Shown here piece by piece: positions 7,778 through 36,471 of a stretch of DNA of 64,000 nucleotides; within the stretch, counting starts at the first letter, position 1; the number at the start of each line of letters is the position of its first letter. The stretch comes from Chrysemys picta bellii (Eukaryota). Position numbers and translations under genes: made by a program. The notes beneath the pieces were generated by a model. It did not search any database and was not told where the DNA came from. It saw only the letters and a list, made by a program, of their open reading frames with translations. The stretch covers positions 101,742,001 to 101,806,000 of the forward strand of contig NC_088797.1 in assembly GCF_011386835.1 (NCBI RefSeq), written 5' to 3'.

Positions 7778-7869
7778 TTATGACAAAGATGTAATATTGG
7801 AACGTCCACCAGGGGGTGCGATGATTTTTTGAGCAGGACGTCTTGCAATATGGTCATCTGTTTGAGATC
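7778..7869 (-). CDS. DPYSL4: DPYSL4 exon 14 coding part [30 protein letters not shown]
   Basis: 92 nt, ttctcttctag|, ends TAA. The C-terminus RSNITSLS is CRMP3-type. Total short CDS is 1725 nt. Confidence 0.97.
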
Positions 7870-9139
7870 CTAGAAGAGAAGGCATAGAACTTGAAGAGCT
7901 ACAAACAAGTGACAGCCCCATTGATTTAAATACAGGAATTATTAAATGAAATGTTTTTGTTCATAACAATATATATGTACATGGGTAATCAATAGCAATT
8001 TATTTGTCTTTAATGCATATTGATTTGGAAACTGAACAATAAAATTCAAACAAAAATAAATACCTACACTTTTTATACTTTGGGACAACTTTATAAATAA
8101 GGTATGTAGCATGACATGACCAATGAACTGTATAATCTGTAGAATCTTGTAATTTTTAGTTAAAATGCTTTTGAATTTTAGCAACCCTTCTAATCACCAC
8201 TGAAGCTACAAACTATACTGATAATTTGAAGATCAAATAATATTATTATGTTTTCATGCTCAGACTGAGATAGAACCAAAGCATATTTCAAGCTTAGTAG
8301 TGGGGAAACTAAACATGCTACTATACATAATGAGAATAAATTAAAAGGGTTAATTATAGGAAATGCTGTCAAATGCAATGAAAGACTGTATTCTAATTGG
8401 AAGGAACTGGAAAATTCTAACTGCTTTCCTGGAAAGATCTTTTGCATATTCATTCTAGGACTTTTTTGTAATGATTTGTTTCTCCATGAATAAATAGTTT
8501 CCAGATAATAACATTTTGGGACTTCATTTCATGTAGAGCTGTCAAGGATCCATGTGATCTCAGCCAAGTAAGCGAAGAGTTTTATCAGTAACTGTATAAT
8601 GTGGCATTTGCTTTCAAAATTCTTCTTAGCTATGGTACACATGTTCATGCACCAAGTACAGTGTGACACAAAGCTGAGCAGCACATGCATGATGTCCATA
8701 TATGCCAAATGACTGAAGAACGTATGTGTGGTACTCCCATGATTCAAATAAGACTCAAAATTGCATCACTGTGGATAAAATAGCAGAAACTACACCTTTC
8801 ATGGTATGATTTTTTTTATGTAGAAGTCAAATTTCAACTTTATTTACACCAGGATTTATATCAAAATTAACATGAAATAAATTTAAACCTACTATTGTAC
8901 AAGTAGATATGCAGTACTCTTCCCATTCCTAATGGCTGTCATAACAACTAGTTTGAATCTTCAATTCAGGAAACTCACAAGCAGTAAATCATTTATGTGA
9001 GTGTATGATGCCTTTATAGAGATGTGACAGTCTCCACGCCATTGGTTGAAGCGCTGCTGTTCTGAGCATTTGTCATAAGATCTGGGTGACCATTCCCCCT
9101 TATATCCACTTCCACTATTAGCTACTAGTTTAGTTGTGA

Positions 9140-9700
9140 TTCTCCCCTTTTTAAATAAAATCTTGAGACAATCTTTTCATCTAGCCATTGACCTCCCCTA
9201 AAACAAGCTACTGTACATGAGCATTTGTCATCTCACCTCCACTCTAGCCATAGTACTGAATTCGTCCATAGCTGTATCTGTGCTTAGTAATTTTCTCTTC
9301 TGTAACTATGATTCCTTCTCACTCCCTCTCTCCCCATCTGCCTTGACCTTTGCGCTTTAACCATATAATACTACTTGATGCCTTTTCTTAGTTTGTTTGC
9401 ATCTCAGCCATCTTCCTCTCATAGGTTTCCTATATATCCAACCACTTATTTTATGGAATTGGAAAAGGACACAACTCAGGCTGATTTCCTGGCCTCAGTG
9501 AAGTTAATAAGAATTTTGCCATCAATTTCAATGGGGCCAAGATTTCAACCTCTGTTGTCAGACCTCATCAGTCTGATGCCTGTCCTTGGCTCTTTTGTCT
9601 TCTCTGTTTCATACCCATTGGCCACCTCAATTTTTAATTCAAACTTGACATGCATCCTCTCTGGTATCTTGTGACCTACATACTTTAATGTATTTGCATG
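9140..9700 (+). mobile_element. Highly decayed L2/CR1-clade RT remnant
   Basis: Scattered motifs LPFLNKIL, HSTE and VLGSFVFS correspond to the RT motifs LPFLSKIL, HSTETA and VLGPLLFS. Confidence 0.4.
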
Positions 9701-10144
9701 GATAGCTTTCAACCACCTGGAAGAATTTTGTGTTGCTTTTGTATGTAAGATACTATAGCTCTGCAAATTGTACTGTAGCGGGAAAAGTGATTTCTCAAAA
9801 GCAGCAAGGCAATCATCACATAAACTTAGTTGTTAATACATTTTGTCTTTTACATTAGCAGAAATTACTAATGCAATTCTATACCTCTATCATTTTCTTC
9901 TACTTGAGTAACATAACATAAGCTCTGACCCTGCTATTGAACTCAATTTGAATGTACCCCTGCATCCGTTTGGAGTTGCATTAACTTCAGCAGGGTTCCT
10001 CCTGGGTGCACAAGTCTGCCTGCAGGGAGCTCACTGCAAGACTGGGGTATGGTTTGTAAACAATATTTGCACTTCTCAGTCAGTCTAAGCTACCCATGTT
10101 CATCTCTACCTGCAAATGCTACTGTACCCACTGAGCAAACTTAC

Positions 10145-10316
10145 CAGACAAGCTGAATCCTGACAGATGCAGATTACGGACAGGAAAAGTTGGTATTTTG
10201 CCTGAGCAGGGAGCTATCCTTGAAGTAGGAGTGGGGGCTGCAGCTTTAGCAGTCACTATGACATCATGAACTGGCCCATCATAAAGCCCCCTTGGAACAC
10301 CATGAATTTCAGCAAG
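10145..10316 (-). CDS. DPYSL4: DPYSL4 exon 13 LAEIHGVPRGLYDGPVHDVIVTAKAAAPTPTSRIAPCSGKIPTFPVRNLHLSGFSLS
   Basis: 172 nt, ctcgctacag| ... |gtaagt. LAEIHGVPRGLYDGPVH is CRMP3-type. Confidence 0.96.
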
Positions 10317-13300
10317 CTGTAGCGAGATAGAGGATAAACATGTGAGCTGATTCTGAATGAAATGATGAGAAATTTGAAGCTGAAATCTGTTCCCTTACTG
10401 ATTTTTCTTCTCTCCGTCATACATATCCTGAGTTATTATTGTGGGGGGGGGGGGGGGCGGGTTGCACATAAGTTCAGGTTATTTGTTTGAGAAGAACGAA
10501 CATTAAACATTTGCTCTGGAAAATTATTTTACAAGGAGTTACGTAGATTTTGGCCGGCATAAAAAAGAAAATGGCAGGTCAGTTTTGGGCTCTATCATCC
10601 ATGTCAGTCTCCCGTAGAAAGGTCCCTTTCCATTAAATTGGCCACCTGGTGATGATATGGTAGCCTGGCTCCCGCAAAATATAATACCGAGAGATGAAAT
10701 AGGAAGTGTTTGCTGTCAGTGTATCTTGGACACAGTGAACATGGTTCTCATTTACATGAAGGCCCCATTACACTGCTCTCACCTTAAATTACAATAACAC
10801 CCAGTTTCAGGCCCCTTTACACTGCCAGAACTGTGTAAAGGGGTCTTAGGGAAAATCAGAATCAAGCCCAGTGTGTCTTCAGGGTTCGATCATTAATTTT
10901 ATTACTATTAATACTGTTAATGTCTTTATTTTTACAGTGCCTCGGTGCATGCTGAGCACTGTACACTACCACAGAAAGATATTGGCCCTTCCCTCAACAG
11001 CTTGCAATCCAGTTGATTCTTCAAACCAGTATTCTTCACCTCCTAACACTGAGATCAATATTTTCATCTCCAGGGCTAGATTGGCACTTTGCAGTGGCCA
11101 TGAGAAAAGAGCAGTGCATAATTTTGGCTTATTGGCAAAAGGCTTACTGTATTTTTATTTTTTGTTACAGAGAACACACAAAAATGGCATTTTTCCACCT
11201 CACATTCCATTCTGTTTTTCCTTTGGTATGTTGTGAGTTCTGATGTGACAACTCAACGGAACCTGACACGGCATGATTACAATGTCCTATTGCATCAGGT
11301 GCTACTTTAAATCATCCATCTTCTTGACTGGTAGAAAGATCTGAAGCTAGTGCAGAGAAATAGCTACATTACCAGTACTCCATTCACATTATTACCTGCG
11401 GCTAGCTAGTTCTCATCCCAAGCCACTTTATGTACCAGTCATTTTATGATCAAAAATTAGTACAGAGCATTTAGAAAATAGAAAAAGGTTTGGGTTTGAG
11501 CATAATGAAGTCAGGACAGATACAAATTGTAAAGAATAACTATTCTGCATTTTAAAATAGCATTTCAGTTTCACTGCTAACCTGTCATGCCATCTGATCT
11601 TCATCTCTGTAATACTGAAAACTGTGTAAAGTTGATATCCAATGCAATATTTTCCAACACCATTTTGGACCCTTTTCTCTCTCTCCAAAAAGCCATTGCT
11701 AGACAAGGGACCAAAAAATGTAATGCAGACAACCAGACTAACTGCCCATAATATCAAATGTGACTGCCCAAATGAATTAACTTCACAAGCAATCAACGAC
11801 CACCTGATCTGATGCCCAATTATTATTTAACTCGGAGTCTAGGAACCTCCAGCTTCATGTGAGCAAAAAGTTTATATTTAGCAAAGTGCCTTCCTTGGAT
11901 GATGAAAAATGACACAATGTTTTTACTTTCAAACATAACATAGATGGAGTTTGATTGGTAGCAAATAGCCTGGAGGCCTTTTGTCACATCGAGTGGGATC
12001 AACCAGACTTAGCAATCGTTTATCTGCAAGTTAAAGAAGGGTGCAAAATATGAGGGGAAAATGCAGGTAGGAGAGCATACAGGAGCAATTCTTCATATTT
12101 CAGGATAAGTGTCATTTTCATGGCCATACCAGAAAGTTAGGAAGGAGTGCAGGTGGGTGAGAGGGCAGGTAATATGGTCACTGCACTGATCATTGCTTCC
12201 ACTCTAGTTTTAAATGACCATAGGTGGCCGCTTTAAAAGCTAAGGCTAGCTACTATGAACAGGATTTATAGTTTTTACAAGGCTCTGTCAGTTTCTTTTA
12301 CTTATTCTGCCTTCCACTGGTGTGCCTCTATTACAGCAATGAATTCACAGAGAAAAGAAAAGCTACAGTAAATCATGTCATGTGGTTATTGCTGTAGTTG
12401 CCGATGTGCGTTGGTGTATTTGGGAGAAATGAAGTGGTTACTGATACTTGCCCTCCATACATCAAATAATGAAAACATCCACAAAACACATGGAAAAATG
12501 GAGGCGTGGTGCAGCTAAGAGATGATATAAAGATCCACCAAAGGAAGCTAGTGTAGAATAAGTCTTATTGGCCCTATAAAATGAAGGAACTACAGAAAAT
12601 ATTTCTGAGCTCCTTGTATTGACACCTTATCTATTAACTATTTACTTACAAACAGAAATAGATAATTCCTGTGACAGAATTGCCATACCAGTTCCTATAT
12701 TATCCCTTCTCCCAGTTGCCAGCATAGGGGATATGGCTAGCAGGAAGGGAACAATCCAGGGCACAAATGAGCAACCTAAAGAATAAGTCAAATCCGGAGA
12801 GGTATTGGGAACTCCCTGTTCCCCTGAAATCCCTATTGACTGACATTTTTTAGAATTTTCTCCAGTCTAAATATTCTTAGATGAGTACATACTTGCTACA
12901 ATCACATACATGTAACAGATTTAAAGTATTTGGCCAGAACATACTAATGACCAATTTGCACAATTGGAGGCAATAAGAGTGCCAACAATGGCTGAAAAGA
13001 CCTGTGAGAAGAAATTAATTAATTTCATTATGGGATATATCACCAAGTGTGGTTTCCTACATTGGCTATTTGAAATAAAAATATCAGAGACCCACTAAGC
13101 CCGGGACATCTCTAATGAGAAATATCTACAGTTAAATTGTAAAAATGTTGCCATCATTTCATTATAATGTATCATGTCATTGAGATTAAATATATTATTT
13201 TAACATCTTTTACCTTTCAAACTGAATTTAGAAGGACCATGTAATTAGATACATAATGCATCTTACGTCTTTGTACTTTTCCTGTATTGGATGATAAGGT

Positions 13301-13745
13301 ACTCTCCTGTAATTAGTAGTAGATTAGTTTACCTTTGAATCTCCTTGAAGACATTCTATTTGTCCAGGAAAACACACCATACCTTATCATCCAATACAAA
13401 ATATTTGATGGAACTGTATATAAAAATTCAATACAGTTTTCTTTTAGTTTCAGATGCATGTGAATTAATAAGTGGTATCAGGTGTAAGAATTGTCATTTG
13501 AACAGCAACACCGTTTATGCATAAGCCAGGCAATGCACAAGAGCAGTTATTTGATAGTTTTACACCTTTTCAAGGCCTACAAGCAGATAACATCAATAAT
13601 ATTTTTGCTCCTGTAAAGGGCCCCCTTTCCCTTCTCTGTCCTACCAGGAGGCTCTGGGATGCTGTAACACAACATTAATAGCAATAGGAGAACAGGGATA
13701 AATTAGAACAGAGATTGTTTTCTTGCAAATAAAAATTCTCCTTAC

Positions 13746-13925
13746 CCTGTTTCTTGCCTTTATTCTTTTATAAACAAAATCAGGGAATGTCTTTCTAGGA
13801 ACGAAGCGACCAGACCCTTGGATGACAAAGAGGTTTCCATCTTCCAGCACAACTTTTCCTTGACTTATAACAACAGTAGGTGAACCACGACACTCTGTTC
13901 CTTCAAATATATTATATTCCACATT
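13746..13925 (-). CDS. DPYSL4: DPYSL4 exon 12 [60 protein letters not shown]
   Basis: 180 nt, tttgtcag| ... |gtaagg. Confidence 0.97.
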
Positions 13926-14190
13926 CTGACAAATCCAAACCAGGATATTCAGAGTTAGTTTAGGGTTAAAAACAAAAATGCCATAAACCCACAGCCTACC
14001 CAATTATATATACACACACATTTTTGTAATACTTTCTTCATGTATAATTAATCATTCCTTAAATAATCCTTTAGATTAGATTTGAAAAAATAAGGATCTC
14101 TATCAATTTGGTGAGCTAAAGCAAACTGGAATGAACAAACAAAATTCATGAACATTTAGCACTAGCTTAAACCACACACTACACTACTTG

Positions 14191-14493
14191 CAGGGGCGGC
14201 TCTATGTTTTTTGCCGCCCCAAGCAAGGCAGTCAGGTGCCCTTCGGCGGCATGCCTGCGGGTGGTACGCTGGTCACGTGGATTCGGCGGCATTTCTGCAG
14301 GTGATCTGCTGGTCCCGCGCCTTCGGAGTACCCGCCACCGAATTGCCACCGATGCTGCGGGACTGGCGGACCTCCCGCAGGCATGCCGCCGAAGACTACC
14401 TGACTGCCACCCTCACGGCAACCGGCACGCCGTCCCCCGCGGCTCACCGCCCCAGGCATGAGCTTGCTGCGCTGGTGCCTGGAGCCACCCCTG
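14191..14493. mobile_element. hAT-like MITE, 303 bp, CpG-rich
   Basis: TIRs caggggcggctc / gagccacccctg; 8-bp TSD actacttg/gctacttg; internal IR cttcggcggcatgcctgcgg / ccgcaggcatgccgccgaag. Confidence 0.85.
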
Positions 14494-14540
14494 GCTACTT
14501 GTGAAGCAAACCAGAGCCCAATTATAGGTATGGATAAGTT

Positions 14541-14594
14541 CCAATTGCTTAACCTAGGTCCCCAGATCCAATTGCTTAACCTAGATCCCCAGCA
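14541..14594. repeat. 27-bp tandem duplication
   Basis: ccaattgcttaacctaggtccccagat / ccaattgcttaacctagatccccagca. Confidence 0.9.
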
Positions 14595-16067
14595 GGCTTC
14601 TGCTGAAACTCACCTTGGACTGACAGAATCTTTTTGCTATGTTTGTCAGGAAACCGCAAGTTCTCTAGCAGAACTGGTTGAAAAATTCCAGTTATATTTT
14701 GTGGGAAATTTGAAAACATTTCATTTTTCAAAACTTCCCATGGAGTTTTTTTCTCTTTTTAAAAATATTCTCCCCATCTCTAAATGAAAAATCTTCTTCA
14801 GCTTTCAAAAACAATTTTTGATACAAAGGTAATAATTTTTGGTTTCTGAAGAGCAAAAGCAAATTTTTCTTTATTGAAAATCAAACTGAAAACCATTTTT
14901 TAACTGAAAAACATCTGCTTCTGTTCAAACAAAATACCATAAAATTTCATTTTCAGAAAAATATTTCATTTTGGTCAAAAATAATTTTTTTGTCAAAAAT
15001 ATTTCAACAAAATAATTTAAAACAGTTCTACCCTCTACATTTTACTAATGTTACATGTAGTTTTACCACTAACCCTTCAAATGTTACTGTGCTTCTCAAG
15101 TTCCAGGTAGGAGTTCATTTTGGGATACCTATGAACTGGGAAACTCTAGAGAAGGTACAGTTTGAACAGACACTGAGGCTTTCCCCAGTGGAATATTACC
15201 AAAGAGAGAGTGACAAGCCTATTTGGGACCAGGGAAGGGGTAGGAAAGCTGGGTTTGGATCTCCACTAAGACTCGTGTTGTTGAAAGATTCCCTTTGGCA
15301 AATGGCTTTTGAGAGTGGGGGTAGTTTCTCAGCTGGTGAATCATTTGCAGAGATAAGGATAAGGAGATGTTCCTAAGTAGCTGATATTCATTCCCATGAG
15401 TTAGCCTAAAGTTCCAGTTGGTGAAATGGGAATTTACCTGAGAAAGGGCTGAGTAAACACTGAGTAAGGACCCCAGGGTTTGTTCCAGTATGAATGGCCC
15501 CTACACAGCTGTGCGAAATGGAATCAATCTTGCTTCCTCTTTTTAGTTTTACATTTGAAAGAGTACAGCCCTTGCATTTATCCAACCCTCGGGGAATATA
15601 TCAACAGTCCCAGTAATTTGCTAACTAAAACAAACTTTTATCTCAATAGTTCTGTTAAATCTTAATTACAGTCATAGCCCTTTAAAATTCCATGTTCAGC
15701 AATTCAAGGTTATTCAGTGGAATTCAGGAGAAATGCTGGGACAGGAAAATGTTCAGGTTAGGATTGTACATTTTTTTCTATGCCTATACAGTACATACTA
15801 ATAGTATCACATTTACAGCAAAAGAATGGTCATCATGTATTGTTTTGCTACTGCATATTCTATAGCATTACTCTACATATTTTTGGTGCCATTGCAGTAA
15901 ATGCCAATAACAAAAGGGATTTATTTCCCTTCCCCCACTCAGATTTAATAAACAACTATACTAATATTTTACCCAAATTCTCTGTTTCAATTTCTCTCTG
16001 ATTAAAGGGAATACATTATTTCACTAATACACCCTGGTTGCAAAATCCTATAAAGAAAAAAAAATTA

Positions 16068-16394
<327 letters not shown>

Positions 16395-17011
16395 TCACAT
16401 TTAATTCAAAAATTGGCTGTCCCTGCAGGACTAGTCATTAAAGACTGTTATAATGTCATACGTTTGAAAACTGATTACAGCTCCCATTTTATAGTCACTA
16501 TGTAGGTACTCCTATGACATGAATACAGCTCAACACTACAGACACTGCATCCCACAACACTGAATAATAAGTGTACAGGGTGAAGTGAGGCTACAGAGAG
16601 GTCTGTGGCAACTATTGTGTATCATCATCATTCATTTGGCAGCACTTTCATCTACAGGACTCATTTCTCTCAGCAATTACTGGGCTCACACCCAGAACTT
16701 TCTTTAATTGATACTGAAGTGAGTCAGTCTTTAGATTATATAATTTCTTCTCTTAGATAGAAAAATACCATGTTTATTGGAACCAGAGCTTTCTAAGTGT
16801 TATTGATCCTCAACATGCTACTAGGAGAAGGATACAAGAAACTGGAGGTACCAGAAGAAAGGGGTCAGATAGTATAATGATGGGTGAGGTATAAGAACCT
16901 AGACAGAGAAACAGAGCTCCAGTGAAGATGAAGATGAATATTTTCAAAGGTGAACATTGTTAGTATAGGCTAAACAATTAGTGCATCGTAAAAAGCACAG
17001 CTGACATAACA

Positions 17012-17102
17012 AACCTGAAGAGCTCTGTGTAGCTCGAAAGCTTGTCTTTCCCCAACTGAAGTTGGTCCAATAAAAGATATTACCTCACCCACCTTGTCTC
17101 TC
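17012..17102 (+). mobile_element. Penelope-like terminal repeat fragment with degenerate hammerhead-like core
   Basis: cCTGAAGA...agctcGAAAgcttgtc followed by ...gttggtccaataaaagatattacctcacccaccttgtctctc. Confidence 0.6.
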
Positions 17103-17599
17103 GAATAACAAACTACACTCAAGATTCACTGTGGACCTGATCCAAAGCTCATTGAAGTCAACACAGAGACTCACAACTTATTTTGAGGGTACTATAATGT
17201 TGCAGAAATTACAAATGAACAAATTCCATATAGTTTGCCCAGTCCTACAGGAAAAGAATACAAATGGAAACTCCATTTCTTGCCTTTCCAAAAATCTTCT
17301 GGATAGACTTATTTCTGATCACAGTTCAGACTGGGATAGAATATTCTTCTAATAAGGAGCTCTTTCAAGACATTTATATTCAAATGTTACATTTTCTCTC
17401 ATTAGGAAAGCTTTTTTAAGTAGCAGCCTAGATAATGTCACACAATGAGGCATTCAGCAATGTAAGATGATAATGTATCTCTTTCCCTTCCATTAAAATT
17501 TTTTTTGCTATTGTCTAAATCCTCATATCTGACAAAATGCCATTTGCATGCACTTGCATTGATAATTCAGCAAACATTTACACTTATTTAGTTACTTAC

Positions 17600-17741
17600 C
17601 ACACACTTCTCCCAAATTATTGACATTCTTTCTTCAATGCCATTTGTTCCCTCTGGAATAAGGGTAAAGTTATCCTTTCCTACTGCCTTCTGCGCGGTGG
17701 TAAATGTGCAGTGGGCACTGCCTGCAACCTGAAGATCCCCA
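17600..17741 (-). CDS. DPYSL4: DPYSL4 exon 10 [47 protein letters not shown]
   Basis: 142 nt, ttaactcag| ... |gtaagt. Confidence 0.97.
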
Positions 17742-18857
17742 CTGAGTTAAAACAAACCAAAATGCAGTTAATGGACAAAATTGATTGCTCAGTTTGTATT
17801 GTTCAGCGTAATAATTCAGGGGCCTTTTCTTTGCAACAATGTACTCTTTAAGAGTGAAATTATCTCCTGTGTAGCAGGTTAAGTGTGACATAAATGGCTC
17901 ATAGGTCTTGTGCTTAGCCCTCTGTGCAGCGGTGAATTTCATCCTTAGGGTAATATTTTCAAAGGTGCCTAGTTGATTTAAGTTCTTAGGTCCCATTGGA
18001 TTTAAGTGCCTAGATGCTTTTGAAAATGTTACCTTAAATGCCCAGTAATTGCACTCCTTAAATCAACATCCCAGTCTTGATCCATCCTTTTGGCCCTGAC
18101 AGCCTTTCAAGAAATGATTCTAAAGGACCTTTTATATCAGGGGTATTCCTGGCTATGGCCAGACCCAAGACAAAACCAGATTCTATATACCAGAATCTAT
18201 TATAACTCAACAAATCTGAGCCAGGCTGATAGGGATAGGAGAAGGAAAGGAGGGAGCTGAGGTGGTTCTCTAGAATGAGGCTCTCTAGGGACATCTGCTC
18301 ATGGAGCCCTGAAACACCCTTCCTGATTTATATCCAGGCTGTAATTCAAGATTGAATTATATGCATATTTTATTGTCTGTTTGTGGACATTATTCCACAG
18401 GACAAAGATTAATCAAATCAAATCAAATCTGTTTGCTTCCCTAGAGTCTAGAGAGAAGAATTTTGTGAAATCTCAGAGAATGCAAAATAATTCTCATCAG
18501 GAGACCTATTAGGGCAGAATATTTACTACTGTAGGTGCCCTTCTACAGGTCAATAGTCTCACCCTACACAGTCTTCAGGTGTTACTTTGGGGCCTGATTT
18601 TTCCATCCCTACTCAGACTGAATAGTAATTTACTCAACAAGGAGTCCTATTGAATGGTTCTACTCAGTGAGCTTTTTGGTGATGACTAGCAAAGACCCTA
18701 AGCCAAAACCCCAGATCCAGACAGTGTGGAAATTTAAGGAGATTGAATCAAAACTCCACTCTGCTCTTTGGGCCCATCTCTGAGGTTGAATAATAATAAC
18801 CCCAGGGACTGGGTTTTGTTCCGCATGCCACTGTCATTTACTCTCCTTGCCAACTCA

Positions 18858-19031
<174 letters not shown>

Positions 19032-20003
19032 CTAATACATAATCTGAAAATATGTAACATGCTCCTGATGGTGAACTCTCTTTTCCCACAGTGTAGACAA
19101 ATGCTAAGTAAAAGATCATTTGAGCCAGTTTCTCTGTGTTTCAGTTTTCTGAATTTCTGTCAGCCAATCAGATTGCTACAAAGTTGAACAGTATTCCTTG
19201 TAAAAGTACAAAGTACCAATCAGGAAACAGCCTTGGCCAAACCCCAGAGTCCTATTCGGTACTATTTTTGGCTGAGAAAGACCAAAGAAAGCAGAACACA
19301 CACTTCAGGACATGGCTCCTTATTTGTAATGGCAGGGAATGTGTCTAAAAATCCCTCTCAGTGGGATACCAAAAATTACACAAAAACTTTGGGCAAAATG
19401 CATGCTTCTGATGTAACTCCATTTAAATCAGTTGATTTACACCTGGGATAGACTCAGTATTGTATGTTTATGACTGGATATTTCTGTCTCTCACCCTTGT
19501 CACCCACGTCCACACACAGTGGGCCAGATCCCCACCCCAGTTGATGTAAATCAACACAGCTCCATTGGCTTCAATGGAGATACACCAGCTGAGGATCTGT
19601 CCGAATTACTATATTCTAGGTATTGTGTTACCTTGTTTCCTTGGAGGAATATTTCTATTTCTTCCCAGTGTGTCAGCAGTTTGAGTTCTCAGGCATTCCC
19701 AGGTTCATTTTTTTTCATTCAAAGCATGACAATAGGTTGGAAATGAATTCTTGATTTTTCCAACTCCACCTAATGAGACTTGTGTAGCAAAGTCTTCAGC
19801 CAATCTCTTTGACTCTTTTGAGTTCACTTCAGTGCAATTAAACTCAGGACACTTTGAAAACTGAAGCTAACATCAAGTGTTGTGCTTTTCAGATGTACCA
19901 GAAATTGCCTAATTATGCACTCTTAACTCCTTTTATTGCAGTGATACTCATGGAGACAAGTAAATAGTTTTAATTAGTGTGTAAATGTGAAGTGGTGTTT
20001 TAC

Positions 20004-20124
20004 CTTTTCGCTTTGCTTGAGCTATCACATCTGCGGCACCTTTGCTCATTACTTTTGTGACATACAAGGGGCAGTTGGCTTGTTTTGCTATTGTAATTGC
20101 ACGGTACACTGCCTCTGCTTCAAC
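20004..20124 (-). CDS. DPYSL4: DPYSL4 exon 8 [40 protein letters not shown]
   Basis: 121 nt, tttcccaag| ... |gtaaaa. Confidence 0.97.
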
Positions 20125-20243
20125 CTTGGGAAACAAGAACACAACCAGGCGACGTCTTACAACATCTCTTTTAGTTGAATGGACATGAATGGAGACTTCT
20201 TTAAAGCTCTAAACATGTTCATTTTACGAACTTAAGATATTAC

Positions 20244-20312
20244 CTCCTCTGGGTGGCTAAGAACATGCCCCTCTGGCCCAGTAATTCCAAGTTCCAACAG
20301 TCTCTTTTGCTC
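20244..20312 (-). CDS. DPYSL4: DPYSL4 exon 7 EQKRLLELGITGPEGHVLSHPEE
   Basis: 69 nt, cacttag| ... |gtaata. Confidence 0.96.
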
Positions 20313-23300
20313 CTAAGTGAATGTAGAAAAATGAGAAAAACAGTAAGTGATGGGAACAATCTAAAATAATGTGGGAATGGAACATCATGTCTAGAGGTAC
20401 TTGAGGGTTATGGAAATTCCTAAATAATATCCTGGAATACCATTTATATCCATGAAAATTAGAGCATCTTAACAGAGACTATGACAATAATAAACAAGAC
20501 ATTCTAGTGGGATTGGTCATACTACTCAACATACTACACTCTGGCGATTTGACAACATGTTGGTGGGGTTCACTTGCTCACAAACAATTAAGCAATCTGC
20601 AGTGATAACTATGTGCTTTTCCTGGGCTATTCATTCAGGCACTTCAAGCTCAGTGTGGAACAGGAGGGTGAAGGCTGGATAGCTCCATCACACAAGGCAT
20701 TCCTATCCTTTTAGAAGTGCAGTCATCTTGAGGGGCTTGTGAAGTCCCACACATATTCCTAGTGGCAATGATTTATGGAGGTCATCCCAAATGAGCATCG
20801 GAAAAGACTTTATACCACACTGCACTGTCCAGCATTCTGTGTATCCCCTCCCACACACACTTTCAGGGGAATGTTATCATCTTTATTAGTATTATTTTTT
20901 CATAGCCCTCAACCTATGGAGCCAGTTTTCTCTGTGACCTTATCCAGTGCTTAATTTGTAATTAAAGAGGTACCAGGGCTCAAGCAATGTTTCTACTTTC
21001 ATAACTGATACAGCAAGTCCAGAGGTGCCGGGGCTATGAACTGCCAAGCCAATGGGTGCTGGGGCTTGGCACTGGAAAGCCCTGGCACAAATTAAACACT
21101 GGCCTGATCCGATCCATGAGGTACTGAGCACATCCATAGCTGCCCTCAACTACTACTGAAGCCAATAGAGGTAGAGGGAGTTCAGCTCCTTTCTCTTAGC
21201 ATTAGGCCAAAGCATGGGCCTGAGAGAGAGAGAAAATTGTAAGTAACACCGGAGAAACATCTCTAGGGCTAGGAACAAATGCTGTGTGTTCCATCAGTGA
21301 GCTGGGAATCTTGCCATCCACCAATGATATAGAGCTCCCTTTGCCAGTTCTGCAGAGGCCACTAAAGATAATCTGCCACATTAGGAAAAACTTCAGTGTG
21401 CTGCTCACCTCTTCATAGGCTTAGGGTGGCAGATTTGGCCCAGCCACCTCTTTGTCATGATGGGGGCAGCCAGGCCAAATCTGCGGCCATAAGCAGCTGC
21501 CCAGAAAACTGCCACCCTAGGCAGCTGCCTAGTTTACCTATTGGTAGAGAAGCCCCGGCAGCTCTGAAAGAGAGCAAGATATACGATCCTAAACCTGTCA
21601 TTGCTGAAGGGCTGACTACTGCCTGTCCTGACCCTCAGGCCACTGTAATGTTTGTCACGAAAATCCCATGTTGCGGGGAGTGGGGAAAGATGAAGGAAAT
21701 GTTTCTTTAATAGCCTGTTCAGGGGCAGGAGGGAATGTGGCTGTTTGAAGCTGCTCACAGCATGGAATGTTGGAGGCATTCCCAGCAAAGATGGACTGGT
21801 GGGCAGAGTGCAGGTGCATGTTAAATGCCATTTTTCCACAACTAATCAAACAGATATAACCATGTATATTTTACACCTCCTTGTTCCATCTTGGCCCTCT
21901 GCATCATATGAGGAGCCACCCAAGAGTATTTCCATTGTTTGCCCTCTCTCAGGGTTTTTGCTGGGGAAGGACAGCTTTAAATTGCACAATTGCAATAATT
22001 GCTGTTGCTAATTATTCCCATCAGCAGAAGCTGTTCTGGGGATATGCTGAATCAGCACATTCTTTGACTTCTCCTGGCCCCACCCCTTCTTAGCTAGCAT
22101 CCACATTTTGTGCAGTGCTGACTCCTATCCATCATCAGTGGAGGGATGGATTCTGTAATTTTCTGCTGCCCTCTGTGGACAGTCTGCTGCCAAATTTATG
22201 GATTTTTTATTTCTGTACCATCCATGCTCCTTTTGCAGATATCCTGGAAGTTCACCTCCAGGGCTCTAATGTTATCACTTGCAGCTTAAATAAATACTTG
22301 TAAAGATATTAAACTGCTTGGGATCACATTATGTTTAACAGCCAGCTAAGGAGAATGAAAAATCCTAGTGGGGAAAACTGGTATTAAGTTCAGGCCTGTT
22401 CGGTACAAAAAGGCCACTTGAAGTGTTGAGAAATGGCATTTAATTATAAAGTCCTCTCTTATATAATACTGTGCATTCAGTTACCTGATTCTCATTTGGA
22501 ATGAATGACAGGTTTATTTCTATTCTGCATTGTATATTCCTAACATCTATTTCACATTTTTCTATGCTAGACTAGAGATAGGTAGAATGAAAATCAATAC
22601 AAATTTTGAATGCAAAATACTCCCTTGTTACTATTTGCCCCTACATTTGGAACTATATATCCAGCTGAAATTACGCTACTGTGAAAGCCTCAAATCTATT
22701 GAATGTTCAGGGCTAGAGCCTTCGATTTTTAAATAAAATGAGAATAAAACATCTCCAAAAGCGGGCACAGTTTAGAGAAGTAAGAAGCCCTAATTTTCTG
22801 CAGGTAGCTGTTATAAATGTACCTGTGATGATAACCAACTGGATGCAAACAGTCAGCATGATGCCTCTGCTTTTAGTAAGGACTCCAGAGATCCTTCCAA
22901 GCTCTTCTGCCAATATATGATGTCACAACAGGCTTTGCTGCCAGTCCACTCCCTCCAAAGCTCAGGTAATCAGATTATCCTAAAGGCCACATCCTGCCTA
23001 GTTGTGTGGGTGGGTGGACTAGGCAGGGAAGAAGATGTAGAGAGCACCCTCCCTCTACTCACCACATGCCTTAGCAGGGCAGAATACCGACCTAACACTG
23101 CAGGGAATACTGAGGAGAGAGACCAGCTTCTGCGCTGGCCACTACACTGCAGACCCAAGAAGGTTTGCTCTACAGGCAAATGTATGGAATTTTTATTTCT
23201 GTACCATCTATATTCCCTTTTGCAAATATCCTTGAAGTTCATTTCCAGGGCTCTCATGTTTCCTTAACTCAGCCACTGAAGTCAATGAAAGTTTTGCCAA

Positions 23301-23581
23301 TAATTTCAATAGGAGCATGAGCTGGGTGATACTATGACTGGCAGCATGCACTAGTGGAACATAGGATGATTCTTTTCACAGAAATAGCCAGGGGTCCCCA
23401 GCAATGTATGCCTCCTGGCCAGCTTTGTATCACTTGTTCCTGAGTTGGCAGGATGACTCAAATGCTGGAAATGTGTCTGGCACTGCTCTGCCCCCTACTG
23501 CCTGTTGTGCAGCCACTTCATTTCAGGGCAGCATTTTGGCCTAAATTAATATTGTGGCCAGTTTTTTATTTAAATGGATAC

Positions 23582-24247
23582 TGTGACAAAGTTCCTCCTC
23601 TAGCTTGGTGGGTCCTGCGCTTACTGGCAGATTTTCTTGCCTCAGAAATTCACCATGTGGATTGGGGAACAGCCCAGAGACCTTCCCCTCTGGAAGAACC
23701 CACAGTCCAGGTCAATTCAGAGGTTTGGGGGGAACCCAGGCCCACCCTCTACTCCAGGTTCCAGCCCAGGGCCCTGTGGACTGCAGCTGTCTATAGTGCC
23801 TCCTGTAACAGCTGCATGACAGCTACAACTCCGTGGGCTACTTCCCCATGGCCTCCTCCAAACACCTTCCTTATTCTCACCACAGGACCTTCCTCCTGGT
23901 GTCTGATAACGCTTTGCACCTCAGTCCTCCAGCAGCACACCCTCACCCTCTCAGTTCCTTGCACCTCTTGCTCCCAGCTCCTCACACTCACACCACAAAC
24001 TGAAGTGAGCTCCTTTTAAAACCCAGGTGCCCTGATTAGCCTGCCTTAATTGATTCTAGCAGCTTCTTCTTAATTGGCTCCAGGTGTCCTAATTAGCCTA
24101 CCTGCCTTAACTGGTTCTAGCAGGTTCCTGATTACTCTAGTGCAGCCCCTGCTCTGGTCACTCAGGGAACAGAAAACTACTCATCCAGTGACCAGTATAT
24201 TTGCCCTCTACCAGACTCCTGTACCCCACTGGTCTGGGTCTGTCACA
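23582..24247. mobile_element. Solo LTR (Gypsy/ERV-like), 666 bp
   Basis: TG...CA ends with inverted termini tgtgaca/tgtcaca; perfect 4-bp TSD ATAC (23578-81, 24248-51). Confidence 0.82.
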
Positions 24248-24262
24248 ATACATTTACTATAC

Positions 24263-24343
24263 CTCGTCAATGATGTCTCCATTTTCAGCATGCACTTGGG
24301 CAATGGCACCCAGGTCGCGAATAATGCTGAATATTTCATACAT
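24263..24343 (-). CDS. DPYSL4: DPYSL4 exon 6 MYEIFSIIRDLGAIAQVHAENGDIIDE
   Basis: 81 nt, ctgacag| ... |gtatag. Confidence 0.96.
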
Positions 24344-24444
24344 CTGTCAGGAAGGAAGGAAAGAATTTCCTAATGTCAGACTGGTCACAGTTTATAAAAA
24401 GTGTAGTTGATTACTTTTATTGCATTTCAGTTATTCTGTGTTAC

Positions 24445-24506
24445 CTGGGCATCAGTGCACTGGAGCTTGTCTTTATAAGCCATGAAAACTAGAAAGGAGT
24501 TCACAC
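24445..24506 (-). CDS. DPYSL4: DPYSL4 exon 5 GVNSFLVFMAYKDKLQCTDAQ
   Basis: 62 nt, tttttaaag| ... |gtaac. Confidence 0.96.
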
Positions 24507-26008
24507 CTTTAAAAAAATAAATTACATGTGTATTTATTGTCACAGCTGAAAACAAATCACTCATGTCTACTAGAGAGGGACGGAAAGAGTGGTATTCAGA
24601 TCTAGGTAAGGTTTTTAGACTAGTGTTGAGGATTGAGATTGAAGCAAGGCTAGGGTTCAGATTTGGACTAAAGGGCATGAAAACTTGTTCTTATGAGATT
24701 TGGGCCCCAAATGTTGTAGTTCATGAAAGATGCTGTACCGTCATTGGTTTTTGGATGCATTTAAACCAGAACCAATAAACAACCCATTTTTTAGTTTTAG
24801 ATCCAACTTGGAACCAAAACCACACAGGTGAGTTCAGTTTCATGGATCTGAATCTTAACCCTTTCCACAAACAGGTTTGAATTCTAAGCTGCAATGCTGG
24901 CTCATTTCTAGGTGCTATATTTGAATCATTTTATTAATGCTGAAAGTACAAATTAAAGCCAAAAGCACTACATTCAAAACAATGTCCTTTAGTTATAGAA
25001 CTACATATACAACACTTATGTATACTGCATTGCATAACAAAATGCATAACTCGTTTCTATCTAATGTGTACTCTGATTCACTTAGTGTTGGGGCCTAGCA
25101 TGTTAATTTCTATTGTATTGCTTTATACTGTTTTTATGTAGATAAAAACCACAATGGTTTTTAAATTATAGTCACACTATGAAATTCTCTCCATTTTATT
25201 ACTATATATGGGTAAGTATGAAAAATGTCTGGTTTCAGCTTTGAATAGCTGCTTCCTTGACTACCACTGAGAATTTTAATGGAAGATTAATTAACAATTT
25301 CTGTGTTAACTGACAAATTCTGTCCCTGAATGTATGACTGCAATTGCCATTGAAGCCAATTAGATTTGTGTAGGCACTTCTGAGCGCAAAAAAACCAGCC
25401 CCAAATATGTGACTAACGCGACATATTAGTGAAATGCATAATCCTGTGGTGGGTGAGTTCTTCAGTAGACAATGTCTACTGGGTAGATAGCCACGGGTTC
25501 TTATATACAAGAACTACAGGTGTAAGTTTTTGTGAAGGGACTGTCAGTGCACAAGAAATACACTTTATATTCAGTACTGCAGGCTGGGAATGGGCTGCTT
25601 TATTCCTATTATATTACAGAGTGGCTGGGAATGGGGAAGCACCCACTAACTAAACAAGAAGCGAAGCAGGTATGGAGCATGGCGCCAACCCATAATACTC
25701 TGAGTAACCCAGTTAATCCCTTGATGTCCACTTTATTACGCAAGTGAAGTAATGTTGCACAATTTGGCCCTGTGGGCCCAATCCTGAAATTCCGTACACA
25801 GATAAATCTCCAGTATAGTCAGTGGGAGTCTTAACAGTGTAAGGACTTCAGAACTGGGCCCAAGAATTTTGTCTTGCACTACCAACGGCGATTTCTTGAT
25901 GTTAGAGGCATGCATATTGCCCTAAAAAGTAGCTGATCTTTTTTCTTGTGTCAGCTTTCATTCTTGCTGGTAACTAGGTTAGTAGAACACTGGTCTTTTT
26001 GTCCTTAC

Positions 26009-26173
26009 CTTTGTCTTTCACTAGAGCTTCCAGTTCCTCTTTTATGCTCTCATGCCAGCGTGTGATGTCAATATGCAGTGAATAATCACAACAGGCTTTG
26101 TTATCAGCACACTCTCTCCATTGGTCATATGCAGCAAGCAGATTCATTCCAGAGTCAGGGAATACATGGTCAA
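26009..26173 (-). CDS. DPYSL4: DPYSL4 exon 4 [54 protein letters not shown]
   Basis: 165 nt, ttcttcag| ... |gtaagg. DHVFPD and [13 protein letters not shown] are CRMP3-type. Confidence 0.97.
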
Positions 26174-27142
26174 CTGAAGAAATAGAGCAGAGTGTCAGCA
26201 GCCTTTATATGATGGAGTAACACAGGGACATTATTATAATGCCCATAAATATGCATTTGTCTAACAGTTTTCTATGGTAGGAAGGAGACATTTTAATGCA
26301 AATTATTCTATAATTAAAAATGAGGAATATGAAAGCTTCCGAACTGTGTTTAACTACCATTAAGACTGAGACAAAAAACAGCAAAACAAGTCAATTCCAA
26401 GTTGTGGCTAACAGTACAACCTGAATTCATCCCCTTGTGTATAGATAATATGGTGATGTGAGACAGGTATGTGCTATCATATACATGCAAGGGGCCAAAT
26501 TCTGCTCTTAGATATTTGTGCACAGCTTCCTTTGACTTTAGCAATGGCAGTCATGCATAGGTATTGTATTTCCCACTACACCTACCTATGCTCATCAGTA
26601 TTAACCTGTGAGACCATTTATAGTTCAGTTCTGTGCCTCCAGTGAGCAAACACTGGACTGAACTGTGTGTTGGTTTTGTAAAGTCTACTTGGGATCAGAT
26701 TGAGTAAATCAAAATCATTTTTACTTTGAACCTCAAAAGTATTTGCTCTCACAACCCCAGAGCTGGAAACTAGTGCAATATTTGATTTCATAACCAAGTC
26801 ACTTTTCTTTCTCCACCTACAAAAAGCACGGTATATAAAGATTAATTTTCTGTGACCATCTGTTTAAAAAGGCCCAGGTAAAAAGGTGCCCTGTATTGCT
26901 TACAACGATAAAGGTGAAAGGGCCTCATAATAAGTAGAATCTTTATCTTTTAAAAAGGAACATATAACAAAACAGAGTTTATTAAAGGAAACTTAATACA
27001 TGGTACAATTGTAACTAACCTGGTCAGAACTAAAGTCTCACTCCTGTGTTAACTGACACTGAGCAATCTTTTCGATGGTGGGACACCGCGTTTGCTTTTT
27101 GAAAGATGTACTTCTTAGAGTCATTGCAATAATGCTACTTAC

Positions 27143-27327
27143 GTATCATGGTGGTTCCTCCTGCTAGGGCTGCTTTTGTGCCTTGATAGAAGTCATCAGC
27201 AGAGGTCATTCCCATCACAGGCATTTGTAGTCTAGTGTGGACATCTATTCCTCCTGGCATAACTAACTGGCCATAGGCATCAAGAGTTTTGACGCCACCA
27301 GGAACTATCAGGTTTTCTCCAATTTGC
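27143..27327 (-). CDS. DPYSL4: DPYSL4 exon 3 [11 protein letters not shown]...[10 protein letters not shown]...[10 protein letters not shown]
   Basis: 185 nt, tttttag| ... |gtaagt; overlaps ORF 27135..27377. Confidence 0.97.
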
Positions 27328-28150: not shown

Positions 28151-28240
<90 letters not shown>

Positions 28241-31949: not shown

Positions 31950-33120
31950 GCAGGTATCTGCAACCTCACCATGCGCATTGTTTTCCTAACGTGTTTGCTG
32001 ACTGTCCGAGCTCCTTGCCAGGGACCCTTCTACTGGGGCATGATTGTCTCCGCTGAGATCTGGGGAATGCAGCAGAGAAATATTTGATACGGCCAGGCCA
32101 GCCCTCCTCCCCCCGCCGCCCAGACCCAGCGCCTGGATTACAGGGCACGCAGCACCGCCATGGCTGAGACGCAGTCACAGGACTCGCTAGAGAGCTGCTC
32201 CGCTAGCATCTCCTGCCGTCCCCAATCTTAAACGGAGCATGAACTAACCCCACCGCCCGCGTCTCCTTCTCCGCGCTGCCCGGGTGCCGCACGTTTGTCC
32301 TTTACTGCCCCTGTCCTCTGACCGCTGCCAGGGTGCTGGATAAGTTATTACGGCTCCATCACCCTCCCGCCTCCTGCCATGAAGCAAACCCAGCAGCTCC
32401 CGGCCGATGGTTGCTCGCAGCCCCCGGGCTGCTGCGAATCAAAAGGCCGCTCGGGGGGCTCGGCACAGAGAAATGCCCTTCTAAAAGGAAAGGGGAGCAG
32501 CTCCAGCCGCCACCCCGCCAGGCCCCGGGCTGCCTGGGCCTCCCTCTCACCGTGATCCGGGGGATGTTCTTCTTGCCTTGGTACGACATCTTCCCGCAAC
32601 TGCCTCCTTTCCGAGCGAGCGCAAGGGGCAGGAATCCACCCTCGGCAGGTGCGCTGCGGGGCCGGGGGTCCCTCCTGGCTCTGGGGCTGGCAGGCCGACA
32701 CCTCTCCGCGGCGGAGTGGCCGGAGCGGGCGGCTTTTCGTGGCGTCTGCGTGCGTCCCTCCCTGGCTGCCTGTTGTTCTTGGAGAGCTCGGTGGCTCCCC
32801 CTGCTCTGGCCGCCCCGCAGCCTCGCTTAGCAGCTGCCTGATTAGCATTCCAGGCTCATGCTTCCCCGACAGCAGCCGCCAGAGAGGCAGCCATGCAGAC
32901 AGCCCGCCGGGGCCTTTCCCCAGGCACCGGCCACTTCCCTGCTCTCCTGGCACCGCGAACAAAAGCCGGCTTTCCCCACCCCGCCACCAGCCTGCCTGCC
33001 AAGAAAGAGCCCGCCCGCCAGGGCCTGGGCCAGCAATGGCTGGGCTCTGTGTGCAGGGGCCCCAGGAGCCAGGGAGGGTGGGTGTCAGACAGAGCCTTGC
33101 CAGTGGCTCATTGTTTCCAT
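31950..33120. promoter_or_regulatory. CpG island over the short-isoform first exon
   Basis: Very GC- and CpG-rich against an AT-rich, CpG-depleted background; spans ATG 32589. Boundaries approximate. Confidence 0.85.
32551..32589 (-). CDS. DPYSL4: DPYSL4 exon 1 (short isoform) MSYQGKKNIPRIT
   Basis: 39 nt, canonical CRMP short N-terminus, donor ACG|GTGAG, phase 0. Confidence 0.96.
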
Positions 33121-33706: not shown

Positions 33707-33815
33707 ATATAGAATGGAACATATATTGAGGAGATATATATACACACATACAGAGAGCATATATATATATATGAGAGTGTATATATATCTCCTCAATATA
33801 TGTTCCATTCTATAT

Positions 33816-33855
33816 GCATCCGAAGAAGTGGGCTGTAGTCCACGAAAGCTTATGC
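33816..33855 (+). ncRNA. Minimal type I hammerhead-ribozyme-like motif (U4C variant)
   Basis: GCAU-CCGAAGA-A-GUGGGC(UGUA)GUCCAC-GAAA-GCUU-AUGC: 4-bp stem I, 6-bp stem II, palindromic AGCU stem III. Confidence 0.55.
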
Positions 33856-34049
33856 TCTAATAAATTTGTTAGTCTCTAAGGTGCCACAAGTACTCCTGTT
33901 CTTCTTTTTTCAGGGACATGAAGTGGAACATGGACCCCTCCGCTTGGAAAGCCTCCCTGGCCTTTGGACAACAGGGGACGGGGCACTCCATAAATTGCCC
34001 TTTTCTGTTTACTCCCTCTGAAGCATCTGGCATGGCCACTATTGGAAGT

Positions 34050-34110
34050 CAGGAAACTGGACTAGATGGACCATTGGTCTGACGGAGCATGGCCAGACTG
34101 ATGTTCTTGT
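34050..34110 (+). mobile_element. CR1-clade 3' tail fragment
   Basis: ...actggactagatggaccattggtctgac...atggcc...atgttctt. Confidence 0.5.
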
Positions 34111-34809
34111 GACCGGGTAGCAGGCAAATGGCTCATTTGGTCGGTCTGTCTCTCTCTGTATAAAGCCTGGTGTGAACCCCTGCATGCCCCACCGGTGGCA
34201 GTTCAGCTGTGGGCTGGTTTTCTGGGCCAAGGGGCCATGGATGGGAATACATTTGGGCTGCACTTAAAAGTCAGAGGCCAATTGGTCGCCTGACAAACCC
34301 ATTAATCCTTTTGTAGTGAGGGAAAAAATCCATCTGCACCTGGCACCCGCTCCTCTGCTGAGGCTGCTATTGATTCAGGGGAATGAAATGGAGCCGCGCA
34401 GCAGACCCCAGAGCCACCCCAGCCTGGCGTGGCCTCGGAAAAGCAGCTGCCTCTGCCTGGATCCCCGTTTCCTGTAACATCACAGGCCAGGCTGGGCAGC
34501 GGCTTGCAGCTGGGATGTCCCAACCTGCAGCTGGTCCCGGCCAGTAGGGCAGCGGGCTTTGCCCAGCGCACGCCGAAGCCAGTGGTAACGCTCCCATTGA
34601 CTTTGAGCGTTTTGTCAGAGTCCCATTTGACTCTGTAGGGGCTCCCACGCTGAGCCCCCTACAGACTCCCCCCACCATGGCTGAATTGCTGGCGCGCGGG
34701 GTAACGCTGACTATAAAGTTTTGCAAACTAAAGTGCTGCTTCCCCGTGCAATGTGCTCGCTGCGCGGGCCGCCGCCTCTGCGCACAGCGCGCAGCCGCTT
34801 CCCGGTTAC

Positions 34810-35166
34810 CTGAGCGTAGCCATCGGGCGCGTCTCCTGCTGCCCCAGCAGCGGGCGGGGAAGGCTCCGCTCCGGCTGGGGTGAGGGCAGGGGCGCTGCGG
34901 CTCCCCGGCGCCTCGCCGCTCTCGCTCTGCCCTTGGGAGTCGCTGGGGCGCTGGCGGAGCGCCCCTCGCTCCGGGGTCTGGGCGCCTCTCCTGCCGCCGC
35001 TCAGCGCGTCCAAGTCCAGCGTTTTGTTTTCAAAGGCTCCTTCCACGCTGCAGAACATGCCACCGAATTTCTGTCTGGGCTTGGGGCTGCCCGAGCCCAG
35101 GGCCGCGAAGTAGGCGGGCAGGTCGGGCTCCCTCCGCTCCTGCTGCTGCTGCCTCTGCTCTGCCAT
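34810..35166 (-). CDS. DPYSL4: DPYSL4 alternative long first coding exon (CRMP-A type N-terminus, 119 aa)
   Basis: ATG in strong Kozak context (GCAGCCATGG). Reads MAEQRQQQQERREPDLPAYFAALGSGSPKPRQKFGGMFCSVEGAFENKTLDLDAL..., the CRMP long-isoform motif. Ends CAG|GTAACC after 357 nt (phase 0), compatible with exon 2. Confidence 0.9.
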
Positions 35167-35382
35167 GGCTGCGGGCGAAGGAGCCCGCCTGGGACGGCCG
35201 GGGACCGGGCAGTGGAGCGGTGCCCGCGGGAGGGCGGCTCACACAGCGCTGGGGGAGGAATGGCAGAGAGAGCAGGGGCTCAGCCTGGTCCCCTTGGCTC
35301 CAACGTGTCGCGTGTGGAAGCCCGGCCGGTGATTCGTTAGCCAGATAACGCCTTTGGGCTCTCCTGTGAGCCCGACAGACAA

Positions 35383-35409
35383 GGAGCTGTCCAAGGCGGT
35401 GGTGCTGAA
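35383..35409 (-). promoter_or_regulatory. Split (non-canonical) RE1/NRSE-like REST site
   Basis: Minus strand TTCAGCACC-ACCGCCTT-GGACAGCTCC: both RE1 half-sites with an 8-nt instead of a 2-nt spacer, about 220 nt upstream of the long ATG. Confidence 0.6.
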
Positions 35410-36471
35410 AGCATCCGCGCCACTGGAGTTCATGAGGACGACATCCCAGGGGGAGGCCACCTAGGACTTTGATCTGCTAGGGAAAGAGCCGCTAGAAAGC
35501 ACCTTTGTGGCAACTTGCTGATAGAGTGGCTTTACTAAAAGCTGAATCTTTCACAATCACCTCCCCTTTCCATAACCGTGTCCACAGTGTCACCGCTTCC
35601 CTTAGCCTCTGCCTGCCACGTTTCAGCCGATTAAATCTACCTTCAGTGTGATTTTTCCCTCCCTCGAAGGAAACCAACTGGCCTTTGGTAAATGTATGCA
35701 GAGCGTTTAGTGTCACCCCAATCCACACCACAGTGCAGCAAATGTGTCTTTGGGCTGCACTGAAAGTGAAGCGGAGTACAGTATAAGCTTCTTTAAGTAA
35801 TAACGAGGAGGGTGGACAGTGCCTGTAGTTTTCTAACGCTGGGAGTCAATAGCTGAAAGGCCTTTTCACCTTTTTTTGGTTCTAGAAATCTGCGAACAGC
35901 AATGCAATGGTGAATCTATCATGCCCGTTAAACATTCAACATGATTCTTTTACAGTGATAAACACTAAATGCCACTTCTGAAACTTAGTATTTCCTGATG
36001 TAAACTATCAACTGTGAAGAAGCCACCAACTTTTAATGGAGTGAAATTTACAGGCTTCTCTAGGTACTGAGCTTTTAATTTTCAGTCTCTTTATTCTTTC
36101 CAGTGAATAGTTCTGTTTTTCCTCAATAAAAAAACCCTCTCCTCTTTTGCATTATTATTCCAGCCAAAAGAATAATATTTACATATGCCGGGATAGAGTT
36201 TGTGTTGGTAATTTATTTCAACGTTCTTTCCTAATTGGAATAATATTTAAATTTGGGGAAAATTTATGAATAATTTCTAAACCATTAAGGATTTCAGAAA
36301 GCCAAGCACTAAATTATCTCTAGATGTCATCGGATCTCAGCCATATGGCAATACCAAATTTCATAGAATATTCTCTAGCTTATATGAGTTGAGGTAGGTT
36401 TGTAGTTTCTGAAAGGCATTGTCCTTTCTAAGGTTGAATAGAATTAAGTCATCATATAGAACTGCAAGCTT

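Follow-up and report, generated by a model that had tools for sequence, protein, structure and literature searches.

Does DPYSL4, the gene for CRMP3, have a long isoform of the kind found in its paralogues? The long forms of CRMP1, CRMP2 and CRMP4 have distinct roles, in localisation to distal axons, binding of RhoA and cell migration. Two recent reviews describe long forms for CRMP1, 2 and 4 and place CRMP3 among the short proteins only, as a single protein of 570 aa; among the RefSeqs they list, human DPYSL4 has 572 aa and the other three genes have long-form entries. The question is raised by a stretch of 64,000 nucleotides from the turtle Chrysemys picta bellii (hereafter the window). An earlier note on it, made from the sequence alone, had proposed that an intact long first exon lies upstream of DPYSL4, that it carries a Ser27-Pro-Lys motif known from CRMP2A, and that sauropsids keep an ancestral isoform which in mammals may be lost or overlooked. 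The note's statement that human DPYSL4 is generally represented by the short 572-aa form agrees with the reviews.

The proposed gene structure could be confirmed by direct reading and by a spliced model, i.e. there is a minus-strand exon of 119 codons (exon 1a) with a strong Kozak context and a phase-0 donor, which gives a 680-aa product when joined to DPYSL4 exon 2. Its ATG at 35166 (cgcagccATGg, with G at both -3 and +4) is the first in-frame start after an upstream in-frame stop, and its 3' end reads ...GGCTACGCTCAG, the final CAG at 34810 bordering on gtaacc. The acceptor sequence ttccattag precedes 28240, the first base of exon 2, and is in phase 0 as well, matching the donor of exon 1a. 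The first coding exon of the short form, exon 1b, lies between the two, and exon 1a is 2.2 kb upstream of it. The spliced model, guided by the long form of grouper CRMP1, contains 13 exons beyond the first exon, from 28240 to 7778, all with GT-AG borders. Its products are a long form of 680 aa and a short form of 574 aa, the former having 119 N-terminal residues in place of the 13 of the latter. The G+C content of the 32-36 kb stretch that holds both first exons is 0.57-0.58, and that of exon 1a is 71%. The open frame by itself is weak evidence, because 13% of the shuffled versions of the exon stay open at this composition; exon 1a stands above chance because it has homologues (125 phmmer matches), because its donor is conserved in other loci and because a spliced contig contains it.

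The assignment of the gene to DPYSL4 was made with two of the 13 exon peptides, which were compared with all PDB chains. The best match of both is 5NKS, dihydropyrimidinase-related protein 4 (DPYSL4), which scores higher than DPYSL2 (96.5 vs 83.4 bits and 64.4 vs 51.4 bits, respectively), and CRMP1, DPYSL3 and DPYSL5 also score lower than DPYSL4 for both peptides. By this comparison the gene is identified as DPYSL4 (CRMP3), since its protein body appears closest to DPYSL4 among the five paralogues. There is no recognisable neighbouring gene among the open reading frames of the 36-64 kb part of the window. The coordinates of the features are collected in Table 1.

Table 1. Features of the DPYSL4 locus, in window coordinates.
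Feature	Position	Strand	Basis
Transcribed 5' leader, at least this far	35167..35472	(-)	contigs of X1 and X5
Exon 1a, coding part, 119 codons, ATG to CAG	34810..35166	(-)	sequence, ORF, homologues, spliced contig
Exon 1a, conserved core, residues 14-56, LP.YF..LG..SP.PR.K.GGMFC.VEGAFENKTL...	34999..35127	(-)	dN/dS, alignment
Ser27-Pro28-Lys29 codons, inside LGSGSPKPRQKF	35080..35088	(-)	direct reading
Exon 1a, variable low-complexity tail, residues 57-119	34810..34998	(-)	dN/dS; in-frame indels vs Mauremys
Splice donor GT of exon 1a (CAG/GTAACC), phase 0	34808..34809	(-)	direct reading; homologous donors
Exon 1b, first coding exon of the short form, MSYQGKKNIPRIT/gtgaga	32551..32589	(-)	direct reading, gene model
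Exon 2, common to long and short forms, phase-0 acceptor	28152..28240	(-)	model; loose end of spliced contig
12 remaining DPYSL4 coding exons, overall span	7778..27327	(-)	model, all GT-AG
DPYSL4 exons	27327-27143, 26173-26009, 24506-24445, 24343-24263, 20312-20244, 20124-20004	(-)
DPYSL4 exons, continued	19015-18859, 17741-17600, 16259-16089, 13925-13746, 10316-10145, 7869-7778	(-)

Contigs of public sequencing runs were compared with positions 33950-35900 of the window. Three small runs from three studies (X1 and X5 from organism A, X6 from organism B) cover 34809-35472 only and leave the intron (34148-34807) and everything upstream of 35533 bare. Coverage by the large run X15, in contrast, is even at ~40x over the whole stretch, as expected of DNA. 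A 118-nt contig of X1 lies on 34810-34898 and continues with 29 letters that are alien to the adjoining genome. These letters have a single match in the window, at 28212-28240, which is exactly the first 29 bases of exon 2, and therefore the junction 34810->28240 that the earlier note had predicted exists in RNA-like data, as one short contig of depth ~5 from a run whose RNA nature is a guess and is not on record. The contigs of two studies (X1 and X5) stop at 35472 and 35471, which gives a leader of at least 306 nt; this is a lower bound, as contigs cannot prove a start site. The leader holds three upstream ATGs on the minus strand (35444, 35433 and 35414), each stopped before 35166. The one at 35433 is in frame with the main ORF, and its stop is ~70 nt ahead of the main ATG. 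A scan for bacterial promoters and terminators found nothing, and its bacterial models are irrelevant to a vertebrate promoter.

The DNA around the exon has a few peculiarities of its own. Positions 34016-34147 are a high-copy repeat inside intron 1, where the summed contig depth reaches ~98,000 in the DNA run vs 40 alongside, and hundreds in the RNA-like runs. At 34607-34644 a contig of X15, a DNA run with the same species label, skips 36 bases and has one G instead, which is either an intronic length polymorphism or an assembly difference; X15 also differs from the window by single bases at 35062, 35074 and 35113 in exon 1a. In the intron between exons 1a and 1b, a segment of 337 bp (33574-33910) is without counterpart in Mauremys mutica, although the alignment with that locus is otherwise unbroken on either side. 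With the direct repeat CAGGGACATGAAG at its flanks and a palindromic interior, the segment has the look of a repeat insertion or of an artefact of assembly.

The 125 matches were obtained by a phmmer search of the 119 residues against 1.8 billion representatives, and CRMP2A-type, CRMP1-long (named as such) and CRMP4-long-type sequences are found among them with E-values of 1e-15 to 1e-10. The matches were grouped by sequence and by a tree on a 60-column core. In this tree the CRMP2A-type sequences form one clade (support 100/100) and the CRMP1-long and CRMP4-long sequences another (100/99), the CRMP1 members being named DPYSL1 or DPYSL1 isoform X1 by their sources. The DPYSL4-type group, which includes the window, is weakly supported on these 60 columns (85/58) and has the CRMP2A-type clade as its neighbour. 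It contains Mauremys mutica, sauropsid-like sequences from public assemblies, many teleosts and a mammalian set on a long branch (0.86), where sauropsid-like and mammal-like are labels given by similarity, with Mauremys, reindeer, goat, macaque, tree shrew and catfish as the species known by name. In the paralogues, the long forms join exon 2 at the same residue, ...S/T-D/E-R-L-L. A Pfam scan of the exon 1a peptide returned no family; the module is absent from Pfam.

Several members of the DPYSL4-type group are already present in databases under other guises. In Mauremys mutica (L005, 10001-10429) a protein 86% identical to the exon 1a peptide of the window is annotated as a separate 142-aa hypothetical protein (KIL84_003453), and its exon is directly upstream of a 574-aa Amidohydro_1 gene and has the same donor. 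The reindeer counterpart (L001, 10001-11141) is a separate 235-aa hypothetical protein upstream of a 572-aa Amidohydro_1 gene; the order there is exon 1a, exon 1b (MSFQGKKSIPRIT) and exon 2, and exon 1a, which is intact and has its ATG and donor, precedes exon 1b by 1.1 kb. A homologue in the catfish Tachysurus ichikawai is named 'DPYSL4 isoform X1'. Named full-length mammalian proteins were found with a mammal-like read-through ORF as the query, for the exon region only: the 721-aa 'PREDICTED: DPYSL4 isoform X1' of Macaca fascicularis has exon 1a spliced to exon 2 (...DPQQ/SDRLLIRGG), and the goat (P0167, 797 aa) and tree shrew (P0172, 773 aa) models read through intron 1, so that exons 1a and 1b are fused. 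There are at least 9 distinct mammal-like open copies of the exon. When spliced mammalian fragments (57-180 aa) were sought with the exon peptide of reindeer as the query, 3 matches came up, none of them spliced.

The donor CAG/GT(A/G) is conserved at the homologous place in 6 of the 7 other loci (L001-L006). At the seventh, a mammal-like public-assembly contig (L007, ~3447), the frame is intact and ...CAGCAG is followed by GCAGTG, not GT, which is perhaps a GC donor, or perhaps a sign that the species has a disabled exon. The ATG, frame and phase-0 donor of the exon are conserved from fish to mammals. We take the exon to be the DPYSL4 copy of the exon 1a that is common to CRMP1-4; judged from these homologues, it is at least as old as bony vertebrates, and it is present in mammals. 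The proposal that the long exon is ancestral is thus borne out by fish, sauropsid-like and mammalian copies. Its being old and present in mammals, the absence of a long CRMP3 from the reviews is therefore a gap in the literature and not a sauropsid speciality. The sauropsid-mammal contrast drawn by the earlier note does not hold, as the exon is upstream of DPYSL4 in reindeer, goat and tree shrew and the macaque model splices it to exon 2. That note had itself said that an equivalent expressed exon in therian DPYSL4 would remove the contrast; the analysis bears this out for the exon itself, which is there in these four mammals.

The selective constraint on the exon was estimated as dN/dS by the Nei-Gojobori method; the alignments behind all the ratios that follow are short, and dS is large or saturated in them. 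When the window is paired with three sauropsid-like loci, dN/dS is 0.10-0.27 in the core (residues 14-56) and 0.36-0.73 in the tail. Three mammalian loci show the same division (core 0.16-0.35, tail 1.0-1.3). The mammal-like DNA that was compared comes from the group nearest to reindeer, and no contig was taken for human. The comparison with Mauremys, with 23 differences and a dN/dS of 0.39, has little power, and the exon is no better conserved there than its flanks (93% vs 92% identity); two indels, of 1 and 8 codons, both keep the frame. In the mammalian loci 309 nt are without an indel, vs 20-60 gapped positions per 400 in the flanks, and over the whole exon the three codon positions have about equal shares of the differences. 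The core is thus under purifying selection in both sauropsids and mammals. These alignments suggest that a constrained module of 40-50 residues precedes a linker that is free to vary, and this agrees with the identity of 35-54% that is reported for the N-terminal regions of the known long CRMP forms (PMC7325199).

The features of long CRMP1-4 isoforms, namely the exon 1a layout, the in-frame join to exon 2 and a homologous extension of ~100 residues, are all found in the turtle gene. The closest likeness is to CRMP2A, the long isoform of DPYSL2, which also has an alternative first coding exon upstream of 1b that joins exon 2 in phase 0. In CRMP2A the extension at the N-terminus is likewise ~100 residues, the 12-mer LGSGSPKPRQKF is identical with Ser at 27, and 31 of the 43 core residues are identical to a CRMP2A-type sequence (P0018, counted by hand). 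In contrast to CRMP2A, the turtle gene is DPYSL4, and the tail of its exon is unrelated, without the CRMP2A-type ...RKVEIRRASGKEALQN... end. The resemblance to LCRMP-1 (CRMP1A) and to the long form of CRMP4 (TUC-4b / L-CRMP4) lies in the exon layout, the ...PRQK.GGMF..VEGA.E.KT.DF... module and the residue at the exon 2 junction, but these form their separate clade and are without Ser-Pro at the homologous column (0/58). The RefSeq DPYSL4 isoform X1 models of Macaca fascicularis and Tachysurus ichikawai have orthologous exons, and the macaque junction is the same. Both are computational models of which the searched papers make no mention, and the macaque exon is without the Ser-Pro segment and has its ATG further upstream.

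The Ser-Pro motif deserves separate consideration. In the window Ser27 is encoded by AGC (35088-35086), Pro28 by 35085-35083 and Lys29 by 35082-35080, and the motif lies in a context of 12 residues that is identical to CRMP2A-type sequences, as had been proposed. Ser-Pro is present at the homologous column in 62 of 64 DPYSL4-type and 27 of 27 CRMP2A-type sequences, and in none of the CRMP1-long or CRMP4-long types, so that it is a feature common to the CRMP2 and CRMP3 exons. The segment is kept in reindeer, goat and others. Macaque, tree shrew and another mammal-like sequence have lost it: a deletion of 13-16 residues takes out ..LP.C.G.LG.GSP.. and leaves ..ARPKLGGVFRCVEDAFENKTL.. and the rest of the core intact (P0170, P0171 and P0173, macaque-like; P0172, Tupaia; P0164). 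As far as these alignments go, the loss of the segment in the macaque and tree-shrew sequences is the only demonstrable lineage difference.

The account of CRMP2A on which the earlier note drew has held up, in that Ser27 of CRMP2A is a Cdk5 site, Pin1 binds the form phosphorylated there and Ser27 is needed for this binding (bioRxiv 10.1101/2025.01.13.632804; PMC7325199). Pin1 binding of CRMP2A also needs Ser623 (Ser522 of the short form), about equally (bioRxiv 10.1101/2025.01.13.632804). When the turtle protein is aligned with human DPYSL2, the equivalent of Ser522/623 is Ala (..RIAPC..), and so is that of Thr514. Because the 12-residue context is identical, it is reasonable to suppose that Ser27-Pro may be a proline-directed phosphosite, as in CRMP2A, and we would put the chance that Ser27 is phosphorylated in the long DPYSL4 of the turtle at a little below even. 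A stabilisation by Pin1 in the manner of CRMP2A, which is stabilised in distal axons, seems improbable, because the turtle protein lacks the second of the two sites on which CRMP2A depends for Pin1 binding; a two-site Pin1 clamp of the CRMP2A kind should probably not be read into this protein.

On balance we consider, with a probability of about 0.8, that the stretch is exon 1a of DPYSL4 (CRMP3), an alternative first coding exon of a 680-residue L-CRMP3/CRMP3A. Lying 2.2 kb upstream of exon 1b, exon 1a would be served by a CpG-rich promoter of its own; transcripts from this promoter would leave out exon 1b and run on from exon 1a into exon 2 in phase 0, and the product would carry the conserved module and the loosely constrained linker at its N-terminus. 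The long-form protein is presumably made and, like other isoforms of this class, would be of about 72-75 kDa. The exon would predate the duplication of CRMP1-4. It could be argued instead that the open frame is a separate small gene, the 151-aa read-through ORF at 34711-35166, since this is how the ORF is annotated in two GenBank genomes (Mauremys mutica, 142 aa, and reindeer, 235 aa). The chance of this is negligible: similarity between species ends at the donor, the residues after ...Q differ and the read-through is short, 34148-34807 is uncovered in the RNA-like runs, and the X1 contig stops matching the adjoining genome at precisely 34810, its remaining letters being those of exon 2. Another thought is that the exon is transcribed and spliced as the leader of an alternative promoter and that its frame is a relic, with no working N-terminal domain translated. 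The frequency of open frames among shuffles (13%), the upstream ATGs in the leader, the near-neutral tail, the even spread of mammalian differences over codon positions and the fact that long CRMP forms are minor in most tissues (PMC7325199) are compatible with this. It is made very unlikely by the strong Kozak context, by a core dN/dS well below 1 in two vertebrate classes, by indels that keep the frame, by the conservation of ATG, frame and phase-0 donor from fish to mammals, and by the paralogous exons in CRMP1, 2 and 4 that are known to be translated. Both of these readings were set aside.

A reading that accepts the long isoform with its Ser27 switch as ancestral, and differs in having it kept in sauropsids and lost in mammals, is that of the earlier note, and we give it an equally poor chance as the relic leader. 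Reviews that give long forms for CRMP1, 2 and 4 only, with human DPYSL4 as a 572-aa RefSeq, and the searched literature, in which a long CRMP3 was not found, are what a loss would lead one to expect; so are the long mammalian branch (0.86) with its neutral tail, the loss of Ser-Pro from the macaque, tree-shrew and P0164 sequences, and the GC in place of GT at one mammal-like donor. These have to be set against the intact reindeer exon 1.1 kb upstream of exon 1b, the at least 9 distinct mammal-like open copies, the macaque RefSeq isoform X1 model with its splice to exon 2, and a mammalian core with a dN/dS of 0.16-0.35 and 309 nt free of indels, the flanks having many. Our preferred reading, an exon 1a of DPYSL4, can be extended to a functional CRMP3A in most jawed vertebrates that the field has overlooked because the short form is the only one given in reviews and reference sets. 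Ser-Pro would then be ancestral, shared only with CRMP2A, and secondarily deleted in the primate/tree-shrew lineage with the rest of the module kept. This extension is tentative, and we would sooner bet against it than for it. If it is true, CRMP3A would be a natural experiment on an N-terminal proline-directed switch.

A full-text literature search for a long CRMP3 or DPYSL4 isoform found no mention of one, and prediction pipelines already model it in at least a macaque and a catfish. The long DPYSL4 form is real and unremarked in the literature, yet predictable and partly in databases, and the advance is an incremental one: the architecture was known and the isoform had been modelled in some species. 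Its practical use is that mis-annotations can be corrected, i.e. the exon that is split off in Mauremys and reindeer and the read-through fusions in goat and tree shrew. For the family as a whole, a fourth long form that is transcribed in turtles and conserved between fish and mammals would complete the CRMP pattern, and work on CRMP3 by knock-out, antibody or expression analysis may then have overlooked an isoform or failed to tell it from the short one.
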